A DNA stretch of 63,050 nt, filler included, from Octopus bimaculoides (lineage: Eukaryota): NCBI RefSeq assembly GCF_001194135.2. It is 5 parts of 5 records of this genome, joined end to end, with 100 filler letters (N's around TTAATTAATTAA, not from the genome) between each part and the next. Parts side by side here need not be neighbours in the genome. Positions count along the whole stretch, not along the records: positions 47,891 to 60,828 come from NC_069009.1; 4 more parts are not named here. The stretch is one strand, 5' to 3'. This document shows positions 47,891-61,379 of the stretch, piece after piece. The number at the start of each line of letters is the position of its first letter. Positions within the stretch are counted from its first letter, which is position 1. The notes beneath the pieces were generated by a model. It made no database searches. It had not been told where the DNA came from and worked only from the letters and a program-made list of their open reading frames with translations. The position numbers were made by a program, and so were the translations under genes.

Positions 47891-47914
<24 letters not shown>

Positions 47915-47927
<13 letters not shown>

Positions 47928-49105
47928 TTTATTGAGATAGTATTTGGAAAATAAAGGTAAATATATATTTTGGAATATTAAAATGGTGTTTGAAACATAA
48001 CTGAAGACAGATATATATTGGGAAATTAAGGTGGTTTGTTGGGGAATTAATTAACAAAAGTCAAACATATATTGGTCTATTAAAATGGTGGTTGAGTCAT
48101 AAACAAAATATAAATATATAAACTGGTATGTTAAAATGGTACTTGGAACATAAGAAAATATAAATATATAATTTGGTGTTTTTAGAATGTTGCTTTGAAT
48201 ATAACTAAAGGCCGATATTTGGAACATAATAAAAGACTTATACATAGGCGCAAAAAAGCTACACGTTTCTATTATGTTATATATACAATAATAATAAAGG
48301 ACGTTACTGTATATATGTTTACAAACCAAGGACGATATATAGACCCCCTTGACTCAAGTTAGAGAAGGGGTGCGTATTATACACAAGGTTTAGGTTTTTC
48401 AGAGGTACAGCCGCCTTAAAATCCCCTGCGTATCATACTCAAGGGTGGAATATACTCGAGGATTTATGGTATGCTGCTGAAATCCACGACACACACTTCC
48501 AAGTGGTCGTTGGGTTGTAACTCAGATCCACGACACTTGTATGAGTGTCGTGGATTTTAGTAGCAACCCAATGATCACTGGAGAGTTTGCCAAAAATAAG
48601 GGTTTTTATAACTGTTCATACATGAATCCTAGAACCGTAACCCCGTGGAAGACTTCTTCAACGAAGTTCAAAATTCGTATATGGGCAGTAATTTTTAACC
48701 AATGAGAAATCAATAATTTCTCATGTTCAGGCAAACGAACCTACGTTCTCTCTCCACCTCTTATGAGTTTGCTACAGGTATATTAAAATGGTGCTTGGAA
48801 CATAATAAAAGATTTATATGGTATTGGTGTACTAAGATGGTGTTTGGTACCTTGGTAAAGAAAATTATATGTATATTGGTATATTGGGTTGGCATTTGGA
48901 ATGTAACAAAAGACATTAAGTACATTGGTACATTAAGATAGTGTTTGGGACATATATTGGTATATTAAGATGGTCTTTGGAACATAACAAAAGATAAATA
49001 TATATTGGTATACTTAGTTGGTGTTTGGGACAAAACAAATGGCAAATATATATTGCTATATTAAGATGATGTTTGGAACAAATTAACTGAAGATATTGGC
49101 AGAAA
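47915..49105. repeat. Diverged ~40-55 bp minisatellite in two blocks (47915-48245, 48775-49105)
   Basis: Consensus atatattggtatattaaRatggtgtttggaacataa recurs more than ten times. Confidence 0.7.
48295..48471 (-). mobile_element. Terminal fragment of a pogo/Tc1-like DNA element
   Basis: Ends with tatactcgaggatttatggta, the reverse complement of a TACCGTAAATCCTCGAGTATA-type terminus. Confidence 0.45.
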
Positions 49106-49205
49106 ATCATCCTGGGACATCTTAATTTGAATATGAAATCTTTTGTACAATCGCAACAGTGGTTAATCTCATGTTGGGTTTATAGCAATTTTGGAGAAAT
49201 TGCTA

Positions 49206-49423
49206 TCAGTGGAAGACGTTTAGTGTCAGAAGTAAAGCTGAATAAAATAATGTGATTGGCCGTTTCCAAATGTGACCACCCAGTGTCGTTGTGGCAGTGT
49301 TGCAACCATCCGTGTTGCAGTGGGTGTAGCAGAACTTTACGGTTTTATAGTCTTCCTTGCCGTAACTGCAGTTTTCGGACATTGGCAGGGGACTGCAGGC
49401 ACGGGTGAAACTTAGCTGTGTGT
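49206..49423 (-). CDS. Ly6/uPAR three-finger protein, terminal coding exon (C-terminal finger plus GPI-signal-like tail)
   Basis: Acceptor ctttcttctttctattccAG; (D)TQLSFTRACSPLPMSENCSYGKEDYKTVKFCYTHCNTDGCNTATTTLGGHIWKRPITLFYSALLLTLNVFH*. Has the CxxxCxxDxCN terminal motif and a hydrophobic C-terminus. Phase matches the exon at 52084-52254. Confidence 0.88.
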
Positions 49424-49804
49424 CTGGAATAGAAAGAAGAAAGTGTATATAAAAAAAATAACTAAAAATAAAAAATAAAAAATAATTAAGAAAATAATAA
49501 AAATAAAAAATCGAAAATAAAAATTAAAAAATTAAAAATAAGAAAGTGTATATAAAAAATAATAATAAAAAAAAATAAAAAAAGAAAATGGATATAAAAA
49601 TAAATAAAATAAAAAATAAAAATAGAAAAATTATAAAAATAAAAAATAGAAAATAGATAAAAATACAAAAGAAAATGTATATAAAAAAATAAAATAAAAT
49701 AAAATAAAAAATAAAAAATAATATACCACAATATATTGGTTTCTAATATTTCATTTTGTATAAAATATATTGATATGTAATAAAGATGAAAATAATAAAA
49801 TTTC

Positions 49805-49838
<34 letters not shown>

Positions 49839-49849
49839 TAATAATAATG

Positions 49850-49881
<32 letters not shown>

Positions 49882-50124
49882 CTTTGAAAAAAGAAATGAT
49901 AAGGCATTATTACTTTGACCAGTCAGCAATGAAATCTGTCAAAATGTTCTCCTTATAGAGTCTCCTGTTTGCAAGAGAAATAACAATGTTTTACGTCTGT
50001 TTATTTCCCGAAAGCAAAGGTGTTTATAAGCTATCTTCTAACTATATTAAAATTTATCTTGGATTTTGTAATACATGCTGACTGTCTGTAAAATATTTAT
50101 CAATTAGTTAATGATATGATATTG

Positions 50125-50500
50125 AAGGCGACGAGCTTGCAGAATCGTTAGCACGCCGGGCGAAATGCTTAGCGGTAGTTTGTCTGCCGCTACGCTCTGA
50201 GTTCAAATTCCGCCGAGGTCGTCTTAGCCTTTCATCCTTTCGGGGTCGATAAATTAAGTACCAGTGATACACTGGGGTCGATGTAATTGACTTAATCCCT
50301 TTGTCTGTCCTTGTTTGTCCCCTCTGTGTTTAGCCCCTTGTGGGCAATAAAGAAATAAGAATCGTTAGCATGCCGGGTGAAATGCTTAGTGGTATTTCGT
50401 CTGCCGTTACGTTCTGAGTTCAAATTCCGCCGAGGTCGACTTTGCCTTTCATCCTTTCGGGGGTCGATAAATTAAGTACCAGTTGCATACTGGGGTTGAT
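50125..50500 (+). mobile_element. Compound SINE, same architecture as 13655-14080
   Basis: Head 50125-50141, alternative-tailed unit 50142-50358, junction GCAATAAAGAAATAA|GAATCGTTAGC at 50358/50359. Confidence 0.92.
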
Positions 50501-50509
50501 AACGACGGC

Positions 50510-50518
50510 AGTGATGAC

Positions 50519-50550
<32 letters not shown>

Positions 50551-50730
50551 CGATGGTGGTGGTGGTAATTATGATGATAGTGATGACGACAACGATGATG
50601 ATGATAATGATGATGATGAAGAAGGCAGAGGCAGGGGCTGACGATGACAGCAACGATGTTGCGTCCTTTGCTGAAATGGTTGTTTCTGTGAAAACACACA
50701 CACACACATACACACACACACATACACACT

Positions 50731-50769
<39 letters not shown>

Positions 50770-50880
50770 ACTGACTGACACACGCACACACACCATGCAC
50801 ATACACGTGCACATACACACACACATACACACGCACATACACACAAACACAATCATAAACACGCACACACACATACACAC
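50510..50880. repeat. (GAT)n and (CA)n microsatellites
   Basis: Simple repeats inside the Ly6 intron. Confidence 0.92.
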
Positions 50881-51059
50881 AGAGCCGTGTTATTGATTTC
50901 TGTGAGAGTCTCAGAAATTCCTGCAAGTTCAATGGAACTGATTGATTTGGCAATAAAGACAGAATGGTAAACAGTCGACTTGAAAGAGTTCTCTGTGGCT
51001 CAGTCATGAAATGTCTGTCTGTTTGTCCTATGCTCAACCCTTATATTTACTCTACTGCC

Positions 51060-51610
51060 AACGCTGTTGCCACGACTGGACGCCTTCATCACAACCACTA
51101 CCGCCACCACCACTACAACTACAACCACAACCATGACCATGACCCACCACCACTACCGCCGTCACCACCACCACTACAACCACAACCACAACCACCTTCA
51201 CCACAACCACCACCACTACAACCACAACCACAGCCATGACCAATGCTGAGGCTATTAACACCATCATGAATATCACCACCACCACCATCACTACCACCAC
51301 CACCACCAAGACCACCACCACTACTACCATCACCACCAATACAACAACAACAACAACAACAACAACAACACCACTACTACCACCAACAACAACAACAACA
51401 ACAACAACAACACCACCACCACCATCACCAATACTACCATCACCACCACTACTAACACCACTACTATCACCACTACCACCACCACCACCACCACCAACAT
51501 CACCACTCCCACTACCACCACCTCCACAACTACCATCACTATCACTACTGCTGCCACCCCCACCGCCGCCACCATGACCATCACCACTACCACCACCATC
51601 ACAACCAGTG
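51060..51610. repeat. CAC/CAA/TAC low-complexity tract
   Basis: The poly-T/P/H/V ORFs here are repeat artefacts. Confidence 0.92.
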
Positions 51611-51611
51611 A

Positions 51612-52012
51612 GAACTGGTGAAATCGGATGGCAACACCAGGCTCCAATCTGATTTGGCAGAGTTTCTACAGCTGGATGCCCTTCCTAACGCCAACCACTC
51701 TGAGAGTGTAGTTTATTTATATATATATATATCATCATCATCATCGTTTAACGTCCGCTTTCCATGCTAGCATGGGTTGGATGATTTGACTGAGGACTGG
51801 TGAAACCAGATGGCTGCACCAGGCTCCAATCTGATCTGGCAGAGTTTCTACAGCTGGATGCCCTTCCTAATGCCAACCACTCCGAGAGTGTAGTGGGTGC
51901 TTTTACGTGCCACCAGCACGAGGGCCAGTCACACGGTACTGGCAACAGTCACCCTCAAATGGTGTATTTTACGTGCCACCGGCACAAGGGCCAGTCAGGT
52001 GGCACTGGCAAG
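51612..52012 (-). mobile_element. Two RTE 3'-UTR fragments (51612-51712, 51731-52012)
   Basis: tttctacagctggatgcccttcctaaYgccaaccac motif. The second copy has a (GAT)n tail on the minus strand. Confidence 0.85.
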
Positions 52013-52083
52013 TAAAGGATAAAAGATAAAACAGAAAATGGATTAAAGGAATAAAAAAATCAAAGAATTATGGAATATCTTAC

Positions 52084-52254
52084 CATTAATATATTCTGCA
52101 ACGGTGATGCAGTATTCATACTGCTTGTACTGTATGCACCGTTTGCTCTCATCATCGACGTGTAAGCAGTGTGTGCAATTGGTTGCAGGTGGAGGGTTTG
52201 ATTCACAATCAGGGGATTTCTCAGATGTGCACTGGGCACACAAGAGGGCCTCAC
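52084..52254 (-). CDS. Ly6/uPAR three-finger protein, internal exon (171 nt, phase 1-1)
   Basis: Acceptor ccttattttcAG, donor G|GTAAGA; (G)EALLCAQCTSEKSPDCESNPPPATNCTHCLHVDDESKRCIQYKQYEYCITVAEYIN. Has the LxCxxC start typical of mature LU domains. Confidence 0.88.
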
Positions 52255-52369
52255 CTGAAAATAAGGGGGGGGGAAAAAAAGATATAGTTATTTTGTTTTT
52301 TTTTTATTCTATTATTTCATTTGTCTTTCCTACCATTTTTTTCTCACTCTTTTATATTTTTAATTTTTT

Positions 52370-52408
52370 TTTTTCCTGATGAAGGACTCACGTCCGAAAC
52401 GTCAAGAT
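52370..52408 (+). ncRNA. Minimal type I hammerhead ribozyme-like motif (Penelope type)
   Basis: CUGAUGA (52376-52382), an extra A, stem II GGAC-UCAC-GUCC, then GAAA-CGU-C. Stem I is weak. Confidence 0.5.
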
Positions 52409-52439
52409 GCTTTCTCTTTCTCTTAAAACAATAAACTAA

Positions 52440-52640
52440 TGCATCATCGTCATCCTCCTCAGCATCGTCGTCATCATCGTCATTATCCTCATCACCATCA
52501 TCATCATCATCGTCATCATCATCATCCTCATCACCATCACCATTGTCATCGTCATCATCATCCTCCTCATCATTATCGTCATCATCGTCGTCATCATCAT
52601 CATCCTCCTCATCATTATCGTCGTCGTCGTCGTCATAATC
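52440..52640. repeat. (CAT/CGT/CCT)n microsatellite
   Basis: Trinucleotide runs producing poly-H and poly-M ORF artefacts. Confidence 0.92.
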
Positions 52641-52689
52641 ATACTATTAAATCTCATTCAATTTAAAAAAAGGTAAAATCGGACAGAAC

Positions 52690-52920
52690 TTATGGGATGA
52701 TCTGATACATGGCCCCCATCACAGGCAAGGTCTGTCTTGGCAAGGTTTTTAGAGCTGGATGCCCTTCCTAACACCAACCACCCAGCAGAGTGGACTGAGT
52801 GCATTTTATATGGCACCAGCACAGGTGAGGTAAGCTTTGGTATAGATTTTACAGCTGGATGCCCTTCCAAGTGCCAACCACTTCCCAGTGAGGACTGGAT
52901 GCTTTTTCCATGGCACCAGT
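52690..52920 (-). mobile_element. RTE-related 3'-UTR fragment
   Basis: Two copies of the agctggatgcccttcc motif. Confidence 0.7.
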
Positions 52921-53365
52921 GAATAAACAATAAATATGAAACAGGTTGATATTCTAACACAATGTTATTTCAGTTGCATAAACTGATTTCTGTAGTATTA
53001 TTAAGAAAATCTTTTTTATTGTTTTGCTGGATTCAGTCATTGGACCATGGCCATGCTGGGGCACTTCCCTCCCATGGTTTTGTCAGTTGTATCACCCTCC
53101 CATCCACACCCCTGACTTCTTTCCGAATATTTTACGTGGTTGGTGTGTTTTATATTGATTTCAATAGAAATGAAAAGCTAGTTGAAAGGGACACACACAC
53201 ACACACACATACACACATGTTGGGCGGTCATAAATAATACAAGATATTTACATTTCGTTTGATTCTGTGGATTTTGTTTGATCTGTGGTATATACACATA
53301 TACATACATACATACATACACATATACACTCTTTTCTATCTAATCTCTCACTCTCTCCATCTTTC

Positions 53366-53401
<36 letters not shown>

Positions 53402-53574
53402 NNNNNNNNNNNNNNNNNNNNNNNNNNNNNNNNNNNNNNNNNNNNNNNNNNNNNNNNNNNNNNNNNNNNNNNNNNNNNNNNNNNNNNNNNNNNNNNNNNN
53501 NTATATATATATATATATATACACACATACGTACATATGTATGTATATATGTGTGTATATATATGTGTGATTGT

Positions 53575-53745
53575 GTATGTTTCAGTCCCCTTACCTAGAC
53601 ATCATGTAATAGTCGTAAACGTGTGTCACTGTCGTACAAGCGGTGTTCGGTTCTAGTCATCTGTGGAGAGAAAACATGTCCCTCCATGGGGAAATATTAC
53701 CTCGCCCGGAAACAGGTGAGGATTGGTGACAGGAAGGGTATCCTG
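53575..53745 (+). mobile_element. SINE body with RTE-type tail
   Basis: ggggaaatattacctcgcccggaaacaggtgaggattggtgacaggaagggtatcc resembles the RTE 3' stem-loop in sense orientation. Confidence 0.55.
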
Positions 53746-53989
53746 CATCAATGTCTTATGAGTTTGAGGACCCATATGAAGGCTTTGAAAAATTGCCCCT
53801 TTTTTTTTGTCTGTAATGAAAACGGAACGAAGGAGAAATAACGACCCAACCGCTAAGGCCACACATCTTCCCTACACTCCCAGATGTAGTCACTCACTTC
53901 GTTTGTTACGATGACGAGTGTTCCGGTTGATTCAATCAACGCAACAGCCTGCTCGTGATATTAACATGCAAGTGGCATCTTGAGTTACG

Positions 53990-54262
53990 TATTGTCATTT
54001 AACGTCCGCTTTCCATGCTAGTATGGGTTGGACGATTTGACTGAGGACTGGTGAACTAGGTGGCTACACCAGGCTCCAATCTAATTTGGCAGAGTTTCTA
54101 CAGCTGGATGCCCTTCCTAATGCCAACCACTCCAAGAGTGTAGTGGGTGCTTTTACGTACCACCGGCATGAAGGCCAGTCAGGCGGTACTGGCAATGGCC
54201 GCGCTCAAAATGGTGTATTTTATGTGCCACCTGCACAGGAGCCAGTCCAGCGGCACTGGCAT
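53990..54262 (-). mobile_element. RTE 3'-UTR fragment
   Basis: Closely similar to 51731-52012. Confidence 0.87.
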
Positions 54263-54904
54263 CAACATTTTAATTCTAAATTATAATTTGTTTTGAAATT
54301 TTAACATATGAATTTTTTTTTAATTATTTTTTCATTGAATAGATAAGATTACTGGGGTAAGACTGCACCACACCCTAGATAGGATTACTAGGCATCGCAT
54401 CATGTTTGCACACAAGACTATTACTACACCGTACCTCACTGNNNNNNNNNNGTCAGGCGGTACTGGCAATGGCCGCGCTCAAAATGGTGTATTTTATGTG
54501 CCACCTGCACAGGAGCCAGTCCAGCGGCACTGGCATCAACATTTTAATTCTAAATTATAATTTGTTTTGAAATTTTAACATATGAATTTTTTTTTAATTA
54601 TTTTTTCATTGAATAGATAAGATTACTGGGGTAAGACTGCACCACACCCTAGATAGGATTACTAGGCATCGCATCATGTTTGCACACAAGACTATTACTA
54701 CACCGTACCTCACTGTCATTGTGCACCCCTAACACAGTAAACTATTTGATCCCGAAACCTGTGGTTACACACCCCCGATGTAGTGTGTGTTGTGTGTTGG
54801 CACTCCATCGCTTACGACGTCGAGGGTTCCAGTTGATTCGATCAACGGAACAGCCTGCTCGTGAAATTAACGTGCAAGTGGCTGAGCACTTCACAGAAAT
54901 GTGT

Positions 54905-55300
54905 ACCCTTCATTTGATCCCAAGACTGCTTCACACGCCAGACACAGTAACCCAGCAACTATACCACGCTAAACCCGCACACCCATCATTTGATCCCAAG
55001 CCTGCTCCACACGCCAGACACAGTAACCCAGCAACTATACCACGCTAAACCCGCACACCCCNNNNNNNNNNNNNNNTCACACGCCAGACACAGTAACCCA
55101 GCAACTATACCACGCTAAACCCGCACACCCCTAATTTGATCCCAAGACTGCCCCACACGCCAGACACAGTAACCCGGCAACTATACCATGCTAAACCTGC
55201 ACAGCCCTCATTTGATCCCAAGACTGCTCCACACACCAGACACAGTAACCCGGCAACTATACCATGCTAAACCTGCACAGTCCTCATTTGATCCCAAGAC
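54905..55300. repeat. 76-bp minisatellite, at least 5 copies, spanning a small gap
   Basis: tttgatcccaag begins at 54913, 54989, 55135, 55211 and 55287 (period 76). Confidence 0.93.
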
Positions 55301-55763
55301 CTCATCACACCATACTAGAGACACACACTCGAGGTATGGTGACCAACAATGCACTACGGCACACCAGTGCCACCCACACACCTTCAATTTCCTCCCAACA
55401 TCGCACCACACCATGACAACTGCACGCCCTGCAAATGCTCCTATAACCTCACCACGCTACGCAGTTGCTGTGTCCCCAACACTGTTCCACACACCATGTA
55501 ATAATCTGCGCAATTGTGCCCCGGGAGCCCTTAACCATCCGTGCTAGTATAGTCCCCATTATCCCCACCTATTTCCAGGTCAGTACTCTTTTTCCCCCCG
55601 CCCATATCTACCCATTTACTAAGCCTGCCACCCGAAATCCACACTCACCCTCCTGATTAACCCCCACTCCCTTCTTCGCCTCAGCTCTGCCCTGCCCTGC
55701 CACCACCACCGCTGCCGCCACCATCGCCGCCGCCGCCACCACCACCACAGCCACAACCCCCAG

Positions 55764-57374
55764 CTACAGATCATTCATGACGTCAAACTCCTTTGAGCAA
55801 TCCGAGTTCATGATGAAACAATGGTCCTGATTGGCCGAGAGAATCTGTAACACCGGCTGCATGTNNNNNNNNNNNNNNNNNNNNNNNNNNNNNNNNNNNN
55901 NNNNNNNNNNNNNNNNNNNNNNNNNNNNNNNNNNNNNNNNNNNNNNNNNNNNNNNNNNNNNNNNNNNNNNNNNNNNNNNNNNNNNNNNNNNNNNNNNNNN
56001 NNNNNNNNNNNNNNNNNNNNNNNNNNNNNNNNNNNNNNNNNNNNNNNNNNNNNNNNNNNNNNNNNNNNNNNNNNNNNNNNNNNNNNNNNNNNNNNNNNNN
56101 NNNNNNNNNNNNNNNNNNNNNNNNNNNNNNNNNNNNNNNNNNNNNNNNNNNNNNNNNNNNNNNNNNNNNNNNNNNNNNNNNNNNNNNNNNNNNNNNNNNN
56201 NNNNNNNNNNNNNNNNNNNNNNNNNNNNNNNNNNNNNNNNNNNNNNNNNNNNNNNNNNNNNNNNNNNNNNNNNNNNNNNNNNNNNNNNNNNNNNNNNNNN
56301 NNNNNNNNNNNNNNNNNNNNNNNNNNNNNNNNNCAAATGACCGGCCTGGTTCCGAGATCGGGATCGCCCCGAGTATTCGCTGCCACCCGAGTGGAGCTCA
56401 GAGTCCATCGCGCCGAAGCCATACGCGTCGCCGTAGTACGGCTGGCTCCAGGCGTCCAAGCTGCTGTCGACGGAGGTGGTGAGGGCTGTCGCTGTGATGG
56501 CCGAGATTGCGTTGCCTAGTAACCCTCGGTGTATCTTGGCGTGCCGGTTGCGCGTGCTAGCGTCGGAGAAGTGCTGCTCGCAGTAGTTGCACTTGTACGG
56601 CTTCTCGCCGGTGTGGATGCGCAAATGCCGGGTGAGAGTGAACGAGTGGAGGAAGGACTTGGCGCAGAAGTTGCACTGGAACGACCGCTTCTTTGTGTGA
56701 ATATTCATGTGTTTGGTCAAGCTGGAGGCACACGAGAACTTCTTGTGGCACACTTCGCATTCGGTGTTGTGGTTACTGCTGCTGTTACTCCCCCCACTGC
56801 GACTAGACTTGCTCGACTTCAAGGTGTGGCTGGAATCGTCGACAGTGGACGAGATTGCTAGGCTGTTGTCAAAGGTAACATTTTCGTTGGACGGGTCCAC
56901 ATCGTCGCCCGTTGTCATAGCAGCGTCCCCACGACCATCACTACTGCTTTTGTTGTTGTTGTTGTTGCTGTCCCCGCCGCCGTCGGACTGATGCAATGGA
57001 GACGCGTCCTTCGCATGGCTCTGCAGGTGTAATCCAAGCAGGTTGACACTGGTGAACAGCTGTTTGCAAGTGTAACATTCCAGTTTCTGGCCGGTGTGTG
57101 ATTTCAAGTGGTCGTTGAGCCGTGCCTCGCTGGCCACGCTTTTGCCACACAGCTCGCACGTGAACGAGCGGTGGGTCTTCTTGTGGGAGACCAACGCCCT
57201 GTACTGTTCGAATGTCTCATCGCAGTCGTTGCAGTGGTAGCGTTTCTCCCCCGTATGGCTTCGGATATGTGTCTTCAGGTACACAGGCTGCGAGAAGGAC
57301 TTCTCACAGAATTTACACTCAAACGTCGCCTTTGGTTTCGGATGAAGTTTGCCGAACGTCGCAAGAAAACTCAT
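55764..57374 (-). CDS. C2H2 zinc-finger protein (4+3 fingers); C-terminus crosses a 469-N gap
   Basis: Seven CxxC-x12-HxxxH motifs with HTGEK-type linkers. An in-frame TGA lies upstream of the ATG at 57374. The frame after the gap and the stop at 55764 are provisional. Confidence 0.9.
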   Translation of the reverse strand: MSFLATFGKLHPKPKATFECKFCEKSFSQPVYLKTHIRSHTGEKRYHCNDCDETFEQYRALVSHKKTHRSFTCELCGKSVASEARLNDHLKSHTGQKLECYTCKQLFTSVNLLGLHLQSHAKDASPLHQSDGGGDSNNNNNKSSSDGRGDAAMTTGDDVDPSNENVTFDNSLAISSTVDDSSHTLKSSKSSRSGGSNSSSNHNTECEVCHKKFSCASSLTKHMNIHTKKRSFQCNFCAKSFLHSFTLTRHLRIHTGEKPYKCNYCEQHFSDASTRNRHAKIHRGLLGNAISAITATALTTSVDSSLDAWSQPYYGDAYGFGAMDSELHSGGSEYSGRSRSRNQAGHLXXXXXXXXXXXXXXXXXXXXXXXXXXXXXXXXXXXXXXXXXXXXXXXXXXXXXXXXXXXXXXXXXXXXXXXXXXXXXXXXXXXXXXXXXXXXXXXXXXXXXXXXXXXXXXXXXXXXXXXXXXXXXXXXXXXXXXXXXXXXXXXXXXXXXXXXXXXXXMQPVLQILSANQDHCFIMNSDCSKEFDVMNDL

Positions 57375-57414
57375 TATTGTTGGTCAACATCGGCTAGCTC
57401 GGAAGATTGGTATA

Positions 57415-57900
57415 GAGGTGGGCAGATAGGCAGGCAGGCAGGTAGCAAGGTACGGAGGTGTGTAGGTAGGTTGTGTGGATAGGTAGGTAGACAGGTTGAA
57501 GGAAGCTAAATTAGTAATAGGTAGGAAAATAGCTAATTTAGTGAGCTAGATTGGTAACTAGACAGGTAGCTAGCTAGGTAGACTGGTGGTTAGACTGGTA
57601 ACCAGGCTGGAAGAATGGTATGTAGGCTATATAAATAGGCAAATAGCCAACTAACTAAATTGGTAACTGGTTAAGTTGGTAGATAGGTGACTATGTAGAT
57701 AGATTGGCAACTAGCTAGATGGGCAAGTAGCTATGTTCATACATAGGAATAGGTGGGTGGGTAGGTAGGCAGGTAGACAGGTAGGTGGATGAGTGGGTAT
57801 ACTGACAAGTAAAGTTGGTAGCTAGCTAATTAGGTAGCTAACTAAAGAGTTAAGTAGCTAATTATCTAGGTAGCTAGATAGGCAACCAGGTAGATAAAGT
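57415..57900. repeat. Degenerate TAGG/TAGC/TAGA tetranucleotide tract
   Basis: Repeated gtag/ctag/atag units upstream of the zinc-finger exon. Confidence 0.8.
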
Positions 57901-58699
57901 ATGAATCAAGGTGCGTAGATGGTTAATCAAGGCCAAGTGAATACCAAATGAAAAAAAAGACAACAAAAAATTACAAAATAAATAACCCCTGTTCTTGGTT
58001 TCGGAAACCCCACTCGAAATTTTAAACTAGATATTTTCCTGGTTACCACAAACAGTTTGTCACTATTTTTCTAGCTTTTATCCCTGCCAATACCATCTTG
58101 GGTTATGTATCAACACCTTAATTCTAAATTATAATTTTTGTTTTGAAATTTTAACATATGAATTTTTTTTTTNNNNNNNNNNNNNNNNNNNNNNNNNNNN
58201 NNNNNNNNNNNNNNNNNNNNNNNNNNNNNNNNNNNNNNNNNNNNNNNNNNNNNNNNNNNNNNNNNNNNNNNNNNNNNNNNNNNNNNNNNATAGATGGATA
58301 GATAGAGACAGATAGATAGCTAGATAGATAGATGTGAGGTTTGTCACTTAAATCAAACCTCGTATACCACTGGTACTTATTTGAATATCAAAAGACCAGC
58401 AATCCCTGCAGTTGATGGAATGGAAAAAAAGGCAAATTGGACCCCTATTTTTTTTTTATCTCCCCAATGGCAGGATTTCAATTCAATGTTTTTAAGAAGA
58501 ACCCACAAAAAAAAAAACAAAAAAAACCTAGTCCCTGGATGTTATTTTGAAAGAATTGGGTGAAAATTTATAAGTTCGAGAGAGCCTATAATATGTTCAT
58601 ATATATGGGTGTTTGTGTGAGTGTGTATGTATATGTGTGCTATGAAGCCAAAACTTCAAAGTCACTATTAACCTTTTCCTTGTAAAAATTATACATACA

Positions 58700-58738
<39 letters not shown>

Positions 58739-58963
58739 GTTTATATATGTATGTGTGTATATATATGTGTATGTGTGATTTATGTATATATATATAGTCA
58801 ACAAAATTTTAACGAGAAGAAATTCGTTATGTTGCCAAGGTGAGAGTTTTTGGTTTCAAATCACAGTAGCAAAATTGTCTCAACAGACTTGGATAGCCAG
58901 GGGGGGAAGCAAATTTAAATCTTTTTTTTTTATATATATAAATTTAATTTTATTTATTTATCA

Positions 58964-59010
<47 letters not shown>

Positions 59011-59696
59011 GTTGTTGTTATTATTTTTTCCTTTTGGTCAAAAATATTTGCTCACATTTCAAAAAAAAAAATTCTGCTGTTTTGGGTAAGTTTCATAAAC
59101 AAACAATACTTATAATGCAGCAATAATAATAATAATAATAATAAATTAATTAATAATTGCAATTAATAATAGGTAATTCCAGGTGTCTTGCAATTTTTTC
59201 TGCTTTTTTTAAAATAACTTATTTTCTTTTTATGTTTGGTTACCCTCAACAGGTTTTATAGCTTTGTGGGTTTTTTTAAGGGTTTTTTTTGTATGCTAGT
59301 GACACCCCAAAAACAAGAAGAGGTTTCTCACATACCCAAAACCAGTAAGGAATCTAACAAATTGCCAGAAGAAAGGGGGGGGGAAAAGTTAATGTAAAGA
59401 ATTACAGCGGAACAGACAGTTAATGTTATTTTGGAGTTTGACCAACTTTTTGGGTGTTTCGCAATTCGGTTTTTAAAAAAAAAATTTTTTTTTTTTTTTT
59501 GTGTGTGTGTGTTTTGTTGGCGTTTATCTTTGACGACGTTTTGTCATTTTATCAAATTGGAGGGCTTGAATTTCAAATTTCAAATTTGGACAAGCAAAAT
59601 GTCAACAGACTTTGGTAACAAGAACTCTGCAAAATCGTTCGCTGTCGGAACAATTTAAAAGAATCACAGAACCAGCTTGTTAAGATTTAAACGTCG

Positions 59697-59716
59697 TTTT
59701 GGCGGGAATTTTGAAA
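59697..59716 (+). promoter_or_regulatory. E2F/CDE plus CHR-like tandem element
   Basis: TTTTGGCGGGAATTTTGAAA is GGCGG, a 4-nt spacer, then TTTGAA. Two more TTTCAAA motifs lie at ~59570-59585. Confidence 0.35.
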
Positions 59717-60214
59717 TGCAGACGGATTACTGCTGATGACGATGATGAAGATGATGATGACAACAAGGATGACAGTGACAGATAACACCCACTTTAGGGG
59801 TAAATATGATCCTTCTTTCTTTTTCTTTTTCTTTAGTCACAGCCCAAACAAGTTTCTGAGTTTCAAGATACAAATAGGAGTCTGGTTAATTCTATTTCTT
59901 CCTTTAGACAGGATCTGTAAAATGGAACAAGAAAGAAAAAAGAAAATCACAAATTTAGATTGATGTTTAGTAATGGGAAATATGAAGCTGATGATATGCG
60001 TTGTCTATCTTTCAATTAATTTTGAAACTAACGAAGAATTTAGTGAAATAATTTTATCATAATTAAACTGGTGTTTGGAACATAAATGAACAAGAAATTT
60101 TGATGGAAGGTTTTAAGACCACTTTGACTCTTTTGTTACCATATTTCTGTTGTTGTTTCAATTAATTTAGAAAATAATGAAGTATAGGCACAGGAGTACT
60201 CTTTACTCTTTTTA

Positions 60215-60626
60215 CTCTCTTTTACTTGTTTCAGCCATTTGACTGTGGCCATACTGGAGCACCGCCTTTTAGTCGAGCAAATCAACCCCAAGNNNNNNNN
60301 NNCCGCCTTTTAGTCGAGCAAATCAACCCCAAGACTTATTCTATCGGTCTATTTTGCCGAACCGCTAAGTTACGGGGACATAAACACACCAGCTTCAGTT
60401 ATCAAGCGATGTTGGGGGTGACAAACACAGACACACAAACATATACACGCACATACATATATACGACGGGCTTCTTTCAGTTTCCGTCTGCCAAATCCAC
60501 TCACAGGGCTTTGGTCGGCCCGAGGCTATAGTAGAAGACACTTGCGCAAGGTGCCAAACAGTGGGACTGAACTCGGAACCATATGGTTTGTAAGCAAACT
60601 ACTTAACCACACAGCCACCCCTGCGC
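60215..60626 (-). mobile_element. Full-length SINE (ctgtgtggtaag family)
   Basis: Head at 60626 and tail ..gtaaaagagtaaaa at ~60215. A 31-bp artefactual duplication spans the 10-N gap. Confidence 0.9.
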
Positions 60627-61379
60627 ATATGTAGATGATATTTGGGATCTTTTTTAAAATGGGGGCCACATTTTTCATTAATGTTTTACGTAGTGTTTTT
60701 GGTATCGAAAGACTTTCAAACTTCGTATACTTATCTATTTTGTGTTATAGAACAGAAAAATATTTTTGTATTCAAATTTATTTCATGTAAAAAATTGTCT
60801 TTTTTCGATAATTTCAACCAATCACTGANNNNNNNNNNNNNNNNNNNNNNNNNNNNNNNNNNNNNNNNNNNNTTAATTAATTAANNNNNNNNNNNNNNNN
60901 NNNNNNNNNNNNNNNNNNNNNNNNNNNNAAGAATACATAATGTAGGTAAATGTATATGCAAAAATACCTATTTGATGTGGTACTGTAAATCATGATAAAC
61001 TAACGTATTATATCCCGCCAGAGAAAAACATGCTTCTTATATATTACTATATAGCATAGATAAAGTACAAGTATCGATATATCTTCAAAAAAAATATACT
61101 TATAGATAAAGAAATAAATGAATTAAAAGTGGATTTAGGAGGATTTGGGGGAGATGAATGAAGGGTAGTTAGCATGAAATTTACTTTATAAACTTACTTA
61201 CGATAACAAAATCGATAGTATATATGTAAATATACTTAAAACTCTATGTATATAAACTTTACGGGGGTTAAACTAACTGTAATAACTTGAGAAGGAGAGA
61301 GAGTGGGATCAGCTGGTGTTGGAGTTAGATATAATTGTTATTTTAGATAATATTATAATGTTATTATGGAGATGTACTT

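Follow-up and report, generated by a model that had tools for sequence, protein, structure and literature searches.

A conserved Ly6/Quiver-type gene of Octopus bimaculoides with a putative sixth disulfide bond between consensus cysteines 4 and 5

The window analyzed here is a stretch of 63,050 nucleotides (nt) of DNA from Octopus bimaculoides, and our examination concerned the piece of it at positions 47,891-60,828 (NC_069009.1). On the minus strand of this piece, two coding segments between 52,254 and 49,206 make up the second and third of the three exons of a gene for a small protein of the Ly6/uPAR (LU) three-finger class. The explanation that we hold to with high confidence is that of a conserved, single-domain gene from the Quiver (QVR) branch of this class, of which the last two of three exons are present, and whose product would be a glycosylphosphatidylinositol (GPI)-anchored protein acting as the partner of another membrane protein.

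Exon 2 (exon A; 52254-52084, 171 nt, minus strand) is preceded by the 3' end of intron 1 (52255..52280, minus strand, phase 1), consisting of a polypyrimidine tract and the acceptor TTTTTTTCCCCCCCCCTTATTTTCAG, and is followed by GTAAGA. The same intron 1 acceptor is likewise found at the Octopus vulgaris locus (L001). Encoded by exon 2 are residues 1-57 and the first base of codon 58, these comprising the last residues of the signal peptide (G-E-A) and then the LU domain from its first cysteine to the first strand of loop 2. Intron 2 (49424..52083, minus strand, 2660 nt, phase 1) runs from GTAAG to CCAG. The coding part of exon 3 (exon B; 49423-49206, 218 nt, minus strand) has CTTTCTTCTTTCTATTCCAG immediately before it and ends with the stop codon TGA at 49208-49206, and it specifies residues 58-129, that is, the remainder of loop 2, loop 3, the C-x3-C-x4-C-N motif, and the C-terminal tail. 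Both junctions are in phase 1, with codon 1 being xGT (GGT in O. vulgaris), the first base of which comes from the upstream exon, and with codon 58 being split as G|AC (Asp58). The spliced product has 129 amino acids (aa), reads GEALLCAQC...CYTHCNTDGCN-TATTTLGGHIWKRPITLFYSALLLTLNVFH up to the stop (complete sequence GEALLCAQCTSEKSPDCESNPPPATNCTHCLHVDDESKRCIQYKQYEYCITVAEYINDTQLSFTRACSPLPMSENCSYGKEDYKTVKFCYTHCNTDGCNTATTTLGGHIWKRPITLFYSALLLTLNVFH), and contains 12 cysteines, at positions 6, 9, 17, 27, 30, 40, 49, 67, 76, 89, 93, and 98. Two of these, Cys30 and Cys40, lie within a 14-codon insert, CLHVDDESKRCIQY (residues 30-43; 52168-52127, minus strand), and the tail TATTTLGGHIWKRPITLFYSALLLTLNVFH (49209..49298, minus strand) resembles a GPI-attachment signal by a Kyte-Doolittle heuristic. 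A preliminary description of this DNA had proposed the two exons, their splice sites and phase, the intron at 49424-52083, and the cysteine count, and all of these proved correct. Its remark that the track of open reading frames (ORFs) misses the last exon did not hold, as the mechanical ORF list has fragments of both exons (52043-52243 and 49206-49382).

According to published accounts, LU genes are made up of three exons, one for the signal peptide and two for the domain, separated by phase-1 introns (PMC6600238). The layout found here agrees with this, with phase 1 at both junctions and with an exon 1 that, while outside the piece, is known from O. vulgaris and Lingula. In both of those genes exon 1 carries a phase-1 donor, and the Lingula gene also has three exons, with both introns matching in position and phase. 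Moreover, the boundary of exon 2 in Argonauta is the same as that in the window, falling after ..N + G, as it does in Lingula. No signal-peptide exon was found in the 8.6 kb upstream of exon 2 within the piece, and thus it must lie past the edge of the piece. Here, neither an inspection of the 3.5 kb between exon 2 and a zinc-finger ORF (for an ATG, a hydrophobic stretch, and a phase-1 donor) nor a tblastn search of the whole piece with the O. vulgaris signal peptide gave a credible exon 1. The possibility of a further Ly6 paralog within the piece was considered and rejected, as the sole C-x-C-x-CN motif and the sole tblastn matches are those of exons 2 and 3.

Comparisons with other species point to a real and conserved gene. 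The preliminary description called it hidden, but the exact product is already in UniParc (UPI00071E53B0, 128 aa, 100% identity to the spliced product), where it clusters with an annotated O. vulgaris protein (CAI9744003.1, 156 aa) that adds the signal peptide MMATTPSFVLLHLVLLFVLLLLLAIHPG, and an ortholog with 73% identity is annotated in Argonauta hians (GAB1610000.1). The O. vulgaris gene spans 33 kb in three exons, the first intron measuring 22.5 kb and the second 10.1 kb, and the window is collinear with this locus on either side of both exons, intron 2 included. Exon 2 shares 87% nucleotide and 89% aa identity with its O. vulgaris counterpart, and exon 3 shares 92.6% nucleotide identity. 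The two coding sequences differ by 28 synonymous and 11 non-synonymous changes, giving a synonymous divergence (dS) of 0.45, a non-synonymous divergence (dN) of 0.037, and a dN/dS of 0.08; the gene is under strong purifying selection. All 12 cysteines are kept in four cephalopod orthologs, and a signal peptide is present in the orthologs P0004, P0002, and P0003, as well as in the bivalve, Lingula, and Lineus proteins. For P0003, a more distant cephalopod ortholog (54% identity), the coding sequence is unbroken in Logan contigs of 2-2.6 kb. The contig collection has this ortholog indexed in 76 blocks, and in each of the five contigs checked a single alignment crosses both exon junctions, so that these contigs are most simply taken as spliced mRNA. 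An exact look-up of the window protein in the same collection returned nothing on record.

From sequence and structural modeling together, the product is assigned to the LU three-finger domains of the Quiver type. The Pfam profile QVR (PF17064) matches it from end to end (profile positions 1-86 of 86) with an E-value of 8e-6 and 27.2 bits, with three of the orthologs scoring 25.7-26.3 bits. An exhaustive HMMER search recovered 91 relatives, 36 of which make up the family alignment and profile, and QVR matches 28 of these 36 (E<=1e-3). While the single sequence found no match among PDB sequences, the 36-sequence profile did so with domain 3 of uPAR (9.5e-8), LYPD3/C4.4A (7e-6), and LYPD6 (2e-4), and a word-indexed homolog search with this profile (third round) added few further proteins. 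The LU consensus consists of ten cysteines, an asparagine after the tenth, and a GPI signal in the last exon (PMC6600238). In the 36-sequence alignment, nine of the consensus cysteines (C6, C9, C17, C27, C49, C67, C89, C93, and C98) show no variation and C76 hardly any; the asparagine that follows the tenth cysteine (C98-N99 in CNTDGCN) is also invariant. A hidden Markov model (HMM) of 27 ten-cysteine relatives aligns all ten consensus cysteines of the octopus protein, with 86 bits.

The AlphaFold2 model obtained with the 36 sequences has a mean predicted local distance difference test score (pLDDT) of 90.5, and above 92 for residues 1-100 (a first run with three sequences gave a pLDDT of 58 and was not used). 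It contains beta-hairpins at residues 48-68 and 76-93, a flexible linker (pLDDT 57), and a terminal helix at residues 113-128. In a Foldseek search of the PDB, every top match is a three-finger protein; among them are the TGF-beta type II receptor (TbRII), uPAR, C4.4A, LYPD6, Lynx1 (2L03), GPIHBP1, and muscarinic toxins (MT7). Here, probabilities are 0.98-1.0 and target-normalized template modeling (TM) scores reach 0.72, with modest E-values of ~6e-3 or weaker. Together, the end-to-end QVR match, the profile matches to uPAR, LYPD3, and LYPD6, and the agreement of AlphaFold2 and Foldseek uphold the three-finger domain put forward in the preliminary description.

The two additional cysteines, C30 and C40, are situated in the insert CLHVDDESKRCIQY between consensus Cys4 (C27) and Cys5 (C49). 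The HMM built from the 27 ten-cysteine relatives alone treats residues 30-43 as one insertion, and the MAFFT alignments concur, which confirms the earlier placement of the extra pair in CLHVDDESKRC, within a segment missing from the ten-cysteine relatives. Among the 90 relatives that span Cys4-Cys5, 73 have no cysteine there, 17 have exactly two, and none has one. The link is 4-18 residues long in the 73 cysteine-free relatives and 20-22 (30 in one) in the 17 two-cysteine relatives. Such strict co-occurrence argues for a C30-C40 bond, and we infer that these two residues form a sixth, non-consensus disulfide. By homology, the remaining pairs would follow the LU connectivity (1-5, 2-3, 4-6, 7-8, and 9-10), here C6-C49, C9-C17, C27-C67, C76-C89, and C93-C98. 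A range of 8-10 cysteines had been given beforehand as canonical for LU domains, but this is not a limit, as disulfides beyond the consensus have been described for LYPD6, long-chain alpha-neurotoxins, BMPR2/ACVR2, and TbRII (PMC6600238). Loop 1, the tip of loop 2, and loop 3/strand E are the sites given for such bonds (PMC6600238), and the link between loops 1 and 2 (Cys4-Cys5) is absent from the positions listed there.

The 12-cysteine form extends well outside the cephalopods, being found in the bivalves Ruditapes philippinarum, Mactra antiquata, and Mya arenaria, the brachiopod Lingula anatina, and the nemertean Lineus longissimus, with one such gene per species recovered in these searches. 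The proteins of this subfamily are already in databases as "uncharacterized", and we found no description of the subfamily in the literature on Ly6 and three-finger proteins of octopus, molluscs, and brachiopods and on scoloptoxin-05. The nearest ten-cysteine forms come from the nemertean Tubulanus, copepods, horseshoe crabs, a mayfly, Artemia, prawns, abalone, and a nematomorph. Given its presence in other phyla, the insert would date from early lophotrochozoan history or else have been repeatedly lost. The suggestion that the extra disulfide is a lineage-specific, coleoid variant therefore falls, and with it the basis for a tie to the coleoid receptor expansions. Separately, a subgroup of the ten-cysteine relatives (P0016, P0024, P0027, P0032, P0042, P0047, P0063, P0066, P0068-P0070, and P0072) has the polar end ...LHH(V/L)LDLLRRRR(K) and no hydrophobic tail; judged by this end, its members would be secreted or otherwise processed LU versions.

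The tail of the octopus protein is made up of TATTTLGGHIWKRP and ITLFYSALLLTLNVFH, in which small residues are followed by the polar spacer HIWKRP and a hydrophobic end of ~15 residues, with no cytoplasmic extension. Its best 12-residue Kyte-Doolittle window is 2.05, and there is no charge in the last 15 residues. This hydrophobic-tail layout is kept in all orthologs, and thus the GPI-type tail of the preliminary description stands as a heuristic signal layout that is also conserved, with the anchoring itself being predicted. The sequons NCT (N26) and NDT (N57) are conserved in the orthologs as well. Signal peptides in the orthologs, conserved sequons, and the cysteine framework all point to the secretory pathway, and the product is probably a GPI-anchored LU protein with six disulfides on the outer leaflet.

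As a proposed mode of action, the signal peptide from the upstream exon would direct the protein into the endoplasmic reticulum, where ~95 residues would fold as a three-finger domain on the ten consensus cysteines and C30-C40 would staple the 14-residue insert at the place where finger 1 meets finger 2. A GPI anchor would then replace the hydrophobic tail, with a small residue in the N99-G106 interval as the attachment site, leaving the protein on the outer membrane leaflet, N-glycosylated at NCT and NDT. There, it may bind another membrane protein or act as its accessory subunit, with the stapled insert giving the base of fingers 1 and 2 an extra or modified surface. As for precedents in the QVR family, Sleepless acts on Shaker and on nicotinic acetylcholine receptors (nAChRs), and septate-junction components are the targets of Boudin, Crooked, and Coiled (PMC6600238). 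All studied members aid the assembly or trafficking of membrane complexes, and sequence alone cannot tell prototoxin-type modulators from septate-junction Ly6 proteins. Since the 12-cysteine form occurs in molluscs as well as in a brachiopod and a nemertean, and is under strong constraint, we favor an old, conserved cell-biological role, such as the assembly or trafficking of membrane complexes, over a coleoid-specific innovation, a cephalopod-specific neuromodulator, or a toxin.

Several points count against this overall explanation. The QVR score lies 0.1 bit under the gathering cut-off (27.2 vs 27.3), with the insert probably costing the product this missing fraction of a bit, and the labels "bou-like", "quiver", and "U-scoloptoxin(05)-like" on the relatives are automatic annotations. 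The signal-peptide exon is outside the piece, and the N-terminus is known from orthologs alone. In this respect, what is present is a piece with no start codon or signal-peptide exon, as might be expected of chance ORFs or a decayed pseudogene, but the dN/dS of 0.08, the intact frame, the 12 cysteines kept across cephalopods, the conservation of the splice sites as far as Lingula, and an ortholog coding sequence that runs uninterrupted through contigs built from many sequencing runs reduce this prospect to next to nothing. Lastly, the model strands at residues 29-33 and 40-44 do not by themselves set C30 opposite C40. This would also suit a different disulfide map, in which the insert re-wires finger 1 in the manner of TbRII (e.g., C9-C30, C17-C27, and C40-C67) and no C30-C40 staple exists. 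For such a map, too, the best Foldseek E-values belong to TbRII ectodomains, which likewise have 12 cysteines and a long finger 1, and the C40-x8-C49 spacing is the usual Cys4-Cys5 spacing of the ten-cysteine relatives. However, the TbRII superpositions are poor, with a root mean square deviation (rmsd) of ~13 Å and TM scores of 0.31-0.37. C27 is the invariant Cys4 by its PPxPxxC motif, both in MAFFT alignments and with an HMM built without 12-cysteine sequences. Moreover, the extra cysteines are gained or lost strictly together, and retaining the five ancestral bonds makes for a simpler history. We regard the re-wired map as unlikely, and prefer the C30-C40 pairing.

With regard to function, the protein might instead be, along the lines of the preliminary description, a coleoid-specific, extra-disulfide prototoxin whose targets for modulation would, as for Lynx1 or Sleepless, be nicotinic receptors, chemotactile receptors derived from nAChRs, or K+ channels. 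Sleepless falls within the same Pfam family, Lynx1 (2L03) is among its fold matches, and some QVR/Ly6 proteins do act on nAChR and Shaker (PMC6600238). Yet the 12-cysteine form, by its occurrence in bivalves, Lingula, and Lineus, is older than the coleoid receptor expansion, another octopus gene with ten cysteines (P0006; "Protein sleepless" in UniRef) scores higher on QVR (37.5 vs 27.2 bits), and the low dN/dS speaks of conservation rather than diversification, so we would give such a modulator only a small chance of being correct. Smaller by far is that of a secreted toxin or salivary-gland three-finger protein with no membrane anchor. Several of the ten-cysteine relatives are named "U-scoloptoxin(05)-like" by NCBI, after centipede venom-gland sequences, and the fold matches include snake and mamba three-finger toxins, but the hydrophobic C-terminal tail is kept in all orthologs, the gene occurs in non-venomous bivalves and brachiopods, and the single copy recovered per species and strong purifying selection reveal no toxin-style expansion. 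More speculatively, and to our mind rather improbably, the insert could form a fourth beta-hairpin between fingers 1 and 2, marking an ancient "LU-plus" subfamily, so far of lophotrochozoan phyla only, with a membrane partner of its own; in cephalopods, this partner could come from the expanded nAChR-like receptor families. Taken together, the conserved, GPI-anchored LU protein with an old role at membrane complexes remains the account we prefer.

Intron 2 consists almost wholly of repeats and measures 2.66 kb here versus 10.1 kb in O. vulgaris. Along it are an A-rich array (49447-49721), (AAT)n (49805-49881), two or three SINE-like (short interspersed element) tandem copies of ~190 nt (~50120-50490), (TGA)n (50512-50619), (AC)n (50694-50881), and (CAC)n (51090-51607). 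Many copies of the SINE-like units are present in the O. vulgaris locus, and ARAGORN found no tRNA in them. A dispersed repeat of ~200 nt, which translates as ...LQSDLAEFLQLDALPNANHSESVV..., is found at 51620-52010, 52700-52920, and 53990-54720, and so flanks exon 2 on both sides; it too has many copies in the O. vulgaris locus. Beyond the stop codon, 254 nt are 87% conserved with O. vulgaris, and the sole AATAAA downstream of the stop within the piece is at ~47933. The presumed 3' untranslated region contains a tandem repeat with a 48-nt period (48924-49082, 2.7 copies), and a similar 51-nt array is located at 48073-48171. In Argonauta hians (L007, 37113-38849), at least six extra copies of a fragment encoding HCNTDGCNIATS(HHHHH) extend over 1.7 kb downstream of exon 3; these are a local tandem amplification of the 3' end of the exon with its His/Tyr-rich, microsatellite-like tail.

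Upstream, a C2H2 zinc-finger ORF (55764-57374, minus strand) with at least six zf-C2H2 stretches (Pfam E 1e-22 to 1e-29) shares its strand with the Ly6 gene and falls inside the expected intron 1 of that gene. It is broken in frame by a run of Ns (55865-56333), and the 536-aa "ORF" is therefore partly artificial. By tblastn, no counterpart was found in the orthologous O. vulgaris intron or in the 10 kb upstream, and the zinc-finger ORF may be a lineage-specific insertion or duplication. That it might form one transcript with the Ly6 exons was considered and rejected, as it ends in a stop at 55764. The piece has six N runs, or assembly gaps, in all (53402-53501, 54442-54451, 55062-55076, 55865-56333, 58173-58289, and 60293-60302), and ORFs that cross them are not real. 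Around one of the 10-N gaps, at 54178-54715, there is a 274-nt tandem duplication with 100% identity that looks like an assembly artefact.

What emerges is a conserved Ly6/Quiver subfamily, defined in molluscs, brachiopods, and nemerteans, with a putative sixth disulfide between Cys4 and Cys5. If the insert does make a new binding surface, this would be a candidate subfamily for the assembly of invertebrate membrane complexes such as septate junctions and ion channels. The finding opens no long-standing question, and is best viewed as a modestly new structural variant of a known family. It also means that the preliminary description, a tool-free reading of the DNA, correctly joined a split eukaryotic gene and recognized its fold.

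Among known systems, the closest is the Quiver family (PF17064: Sleepless/Quiver, Boudin, Crooked, and Coiled of Drosophila, and relatives), with which the octopus protein shares a single LU domain of ~95 residues, ten consensus cysteines, a C-x4-C-N end, a signal peptide as seen in its orthologs, a GPI-signal-like tail, and a profile match over the entire length. It differs from this family in having the 14-residue, two-cysteine insert between Cys4 and Cys5 and a score just below the cut-off. The nearest proteins outside the 12-cysteine group (E 1e-16 to 1e-6) are the ten-cysteine relatives, "U-scoloptoxin(05)-like" or uncharacterized, from Tubulanus (XP_074647957.1), copepod, horseshoe crab, mayfly, Artemia, prawn, and Haliotis. 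These have in common with it the head C-x-Q-C-x-S...P-x-C...PPxPxxC, the core R-x-C-S, the end T-D-G-C-N, and the hydrophobic tail, whereas their own Cys4-Cys5 link is short (4-18 residues) and lacks cysteine. Like the octopus protein with its putative sixth bond, LYPD6 (PDB 6GBI and 6IB6) has a three-finger fold with more than five disulfides, and it is matched by both sequence profile and fold. In contrast to LYPD6, long-chain alpha-neurotoxins, BMPR2/ACVR2, and TbRII, the extra cysteine pair of the octopus protein is in the link between loops 1 and 2. TbRII, moreover, is a transmembrane kinase receptor, whereas the octopus protein stops directly after its hydrophobic tail. Membership among the TGF-beta type II receptors was rejected, as there is no transmembrane segment with a cytoplasmic Ser/Thr kinase after it and the stop falls four residues beyond the 12-residue stretch of highest hydrophobicity in the tail. 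With the GPI-anchored Ly6 proteins of the Lynx1/CD59 type, there is agreement in the three exons, phase-1 introns, ten consensus cysteines, asparagine after Cys10, and GPI-type tail (PMC6600238), and the difference lies in the longer, proline-rich finger 1 region and putatively stapled insert of the octopus protein.

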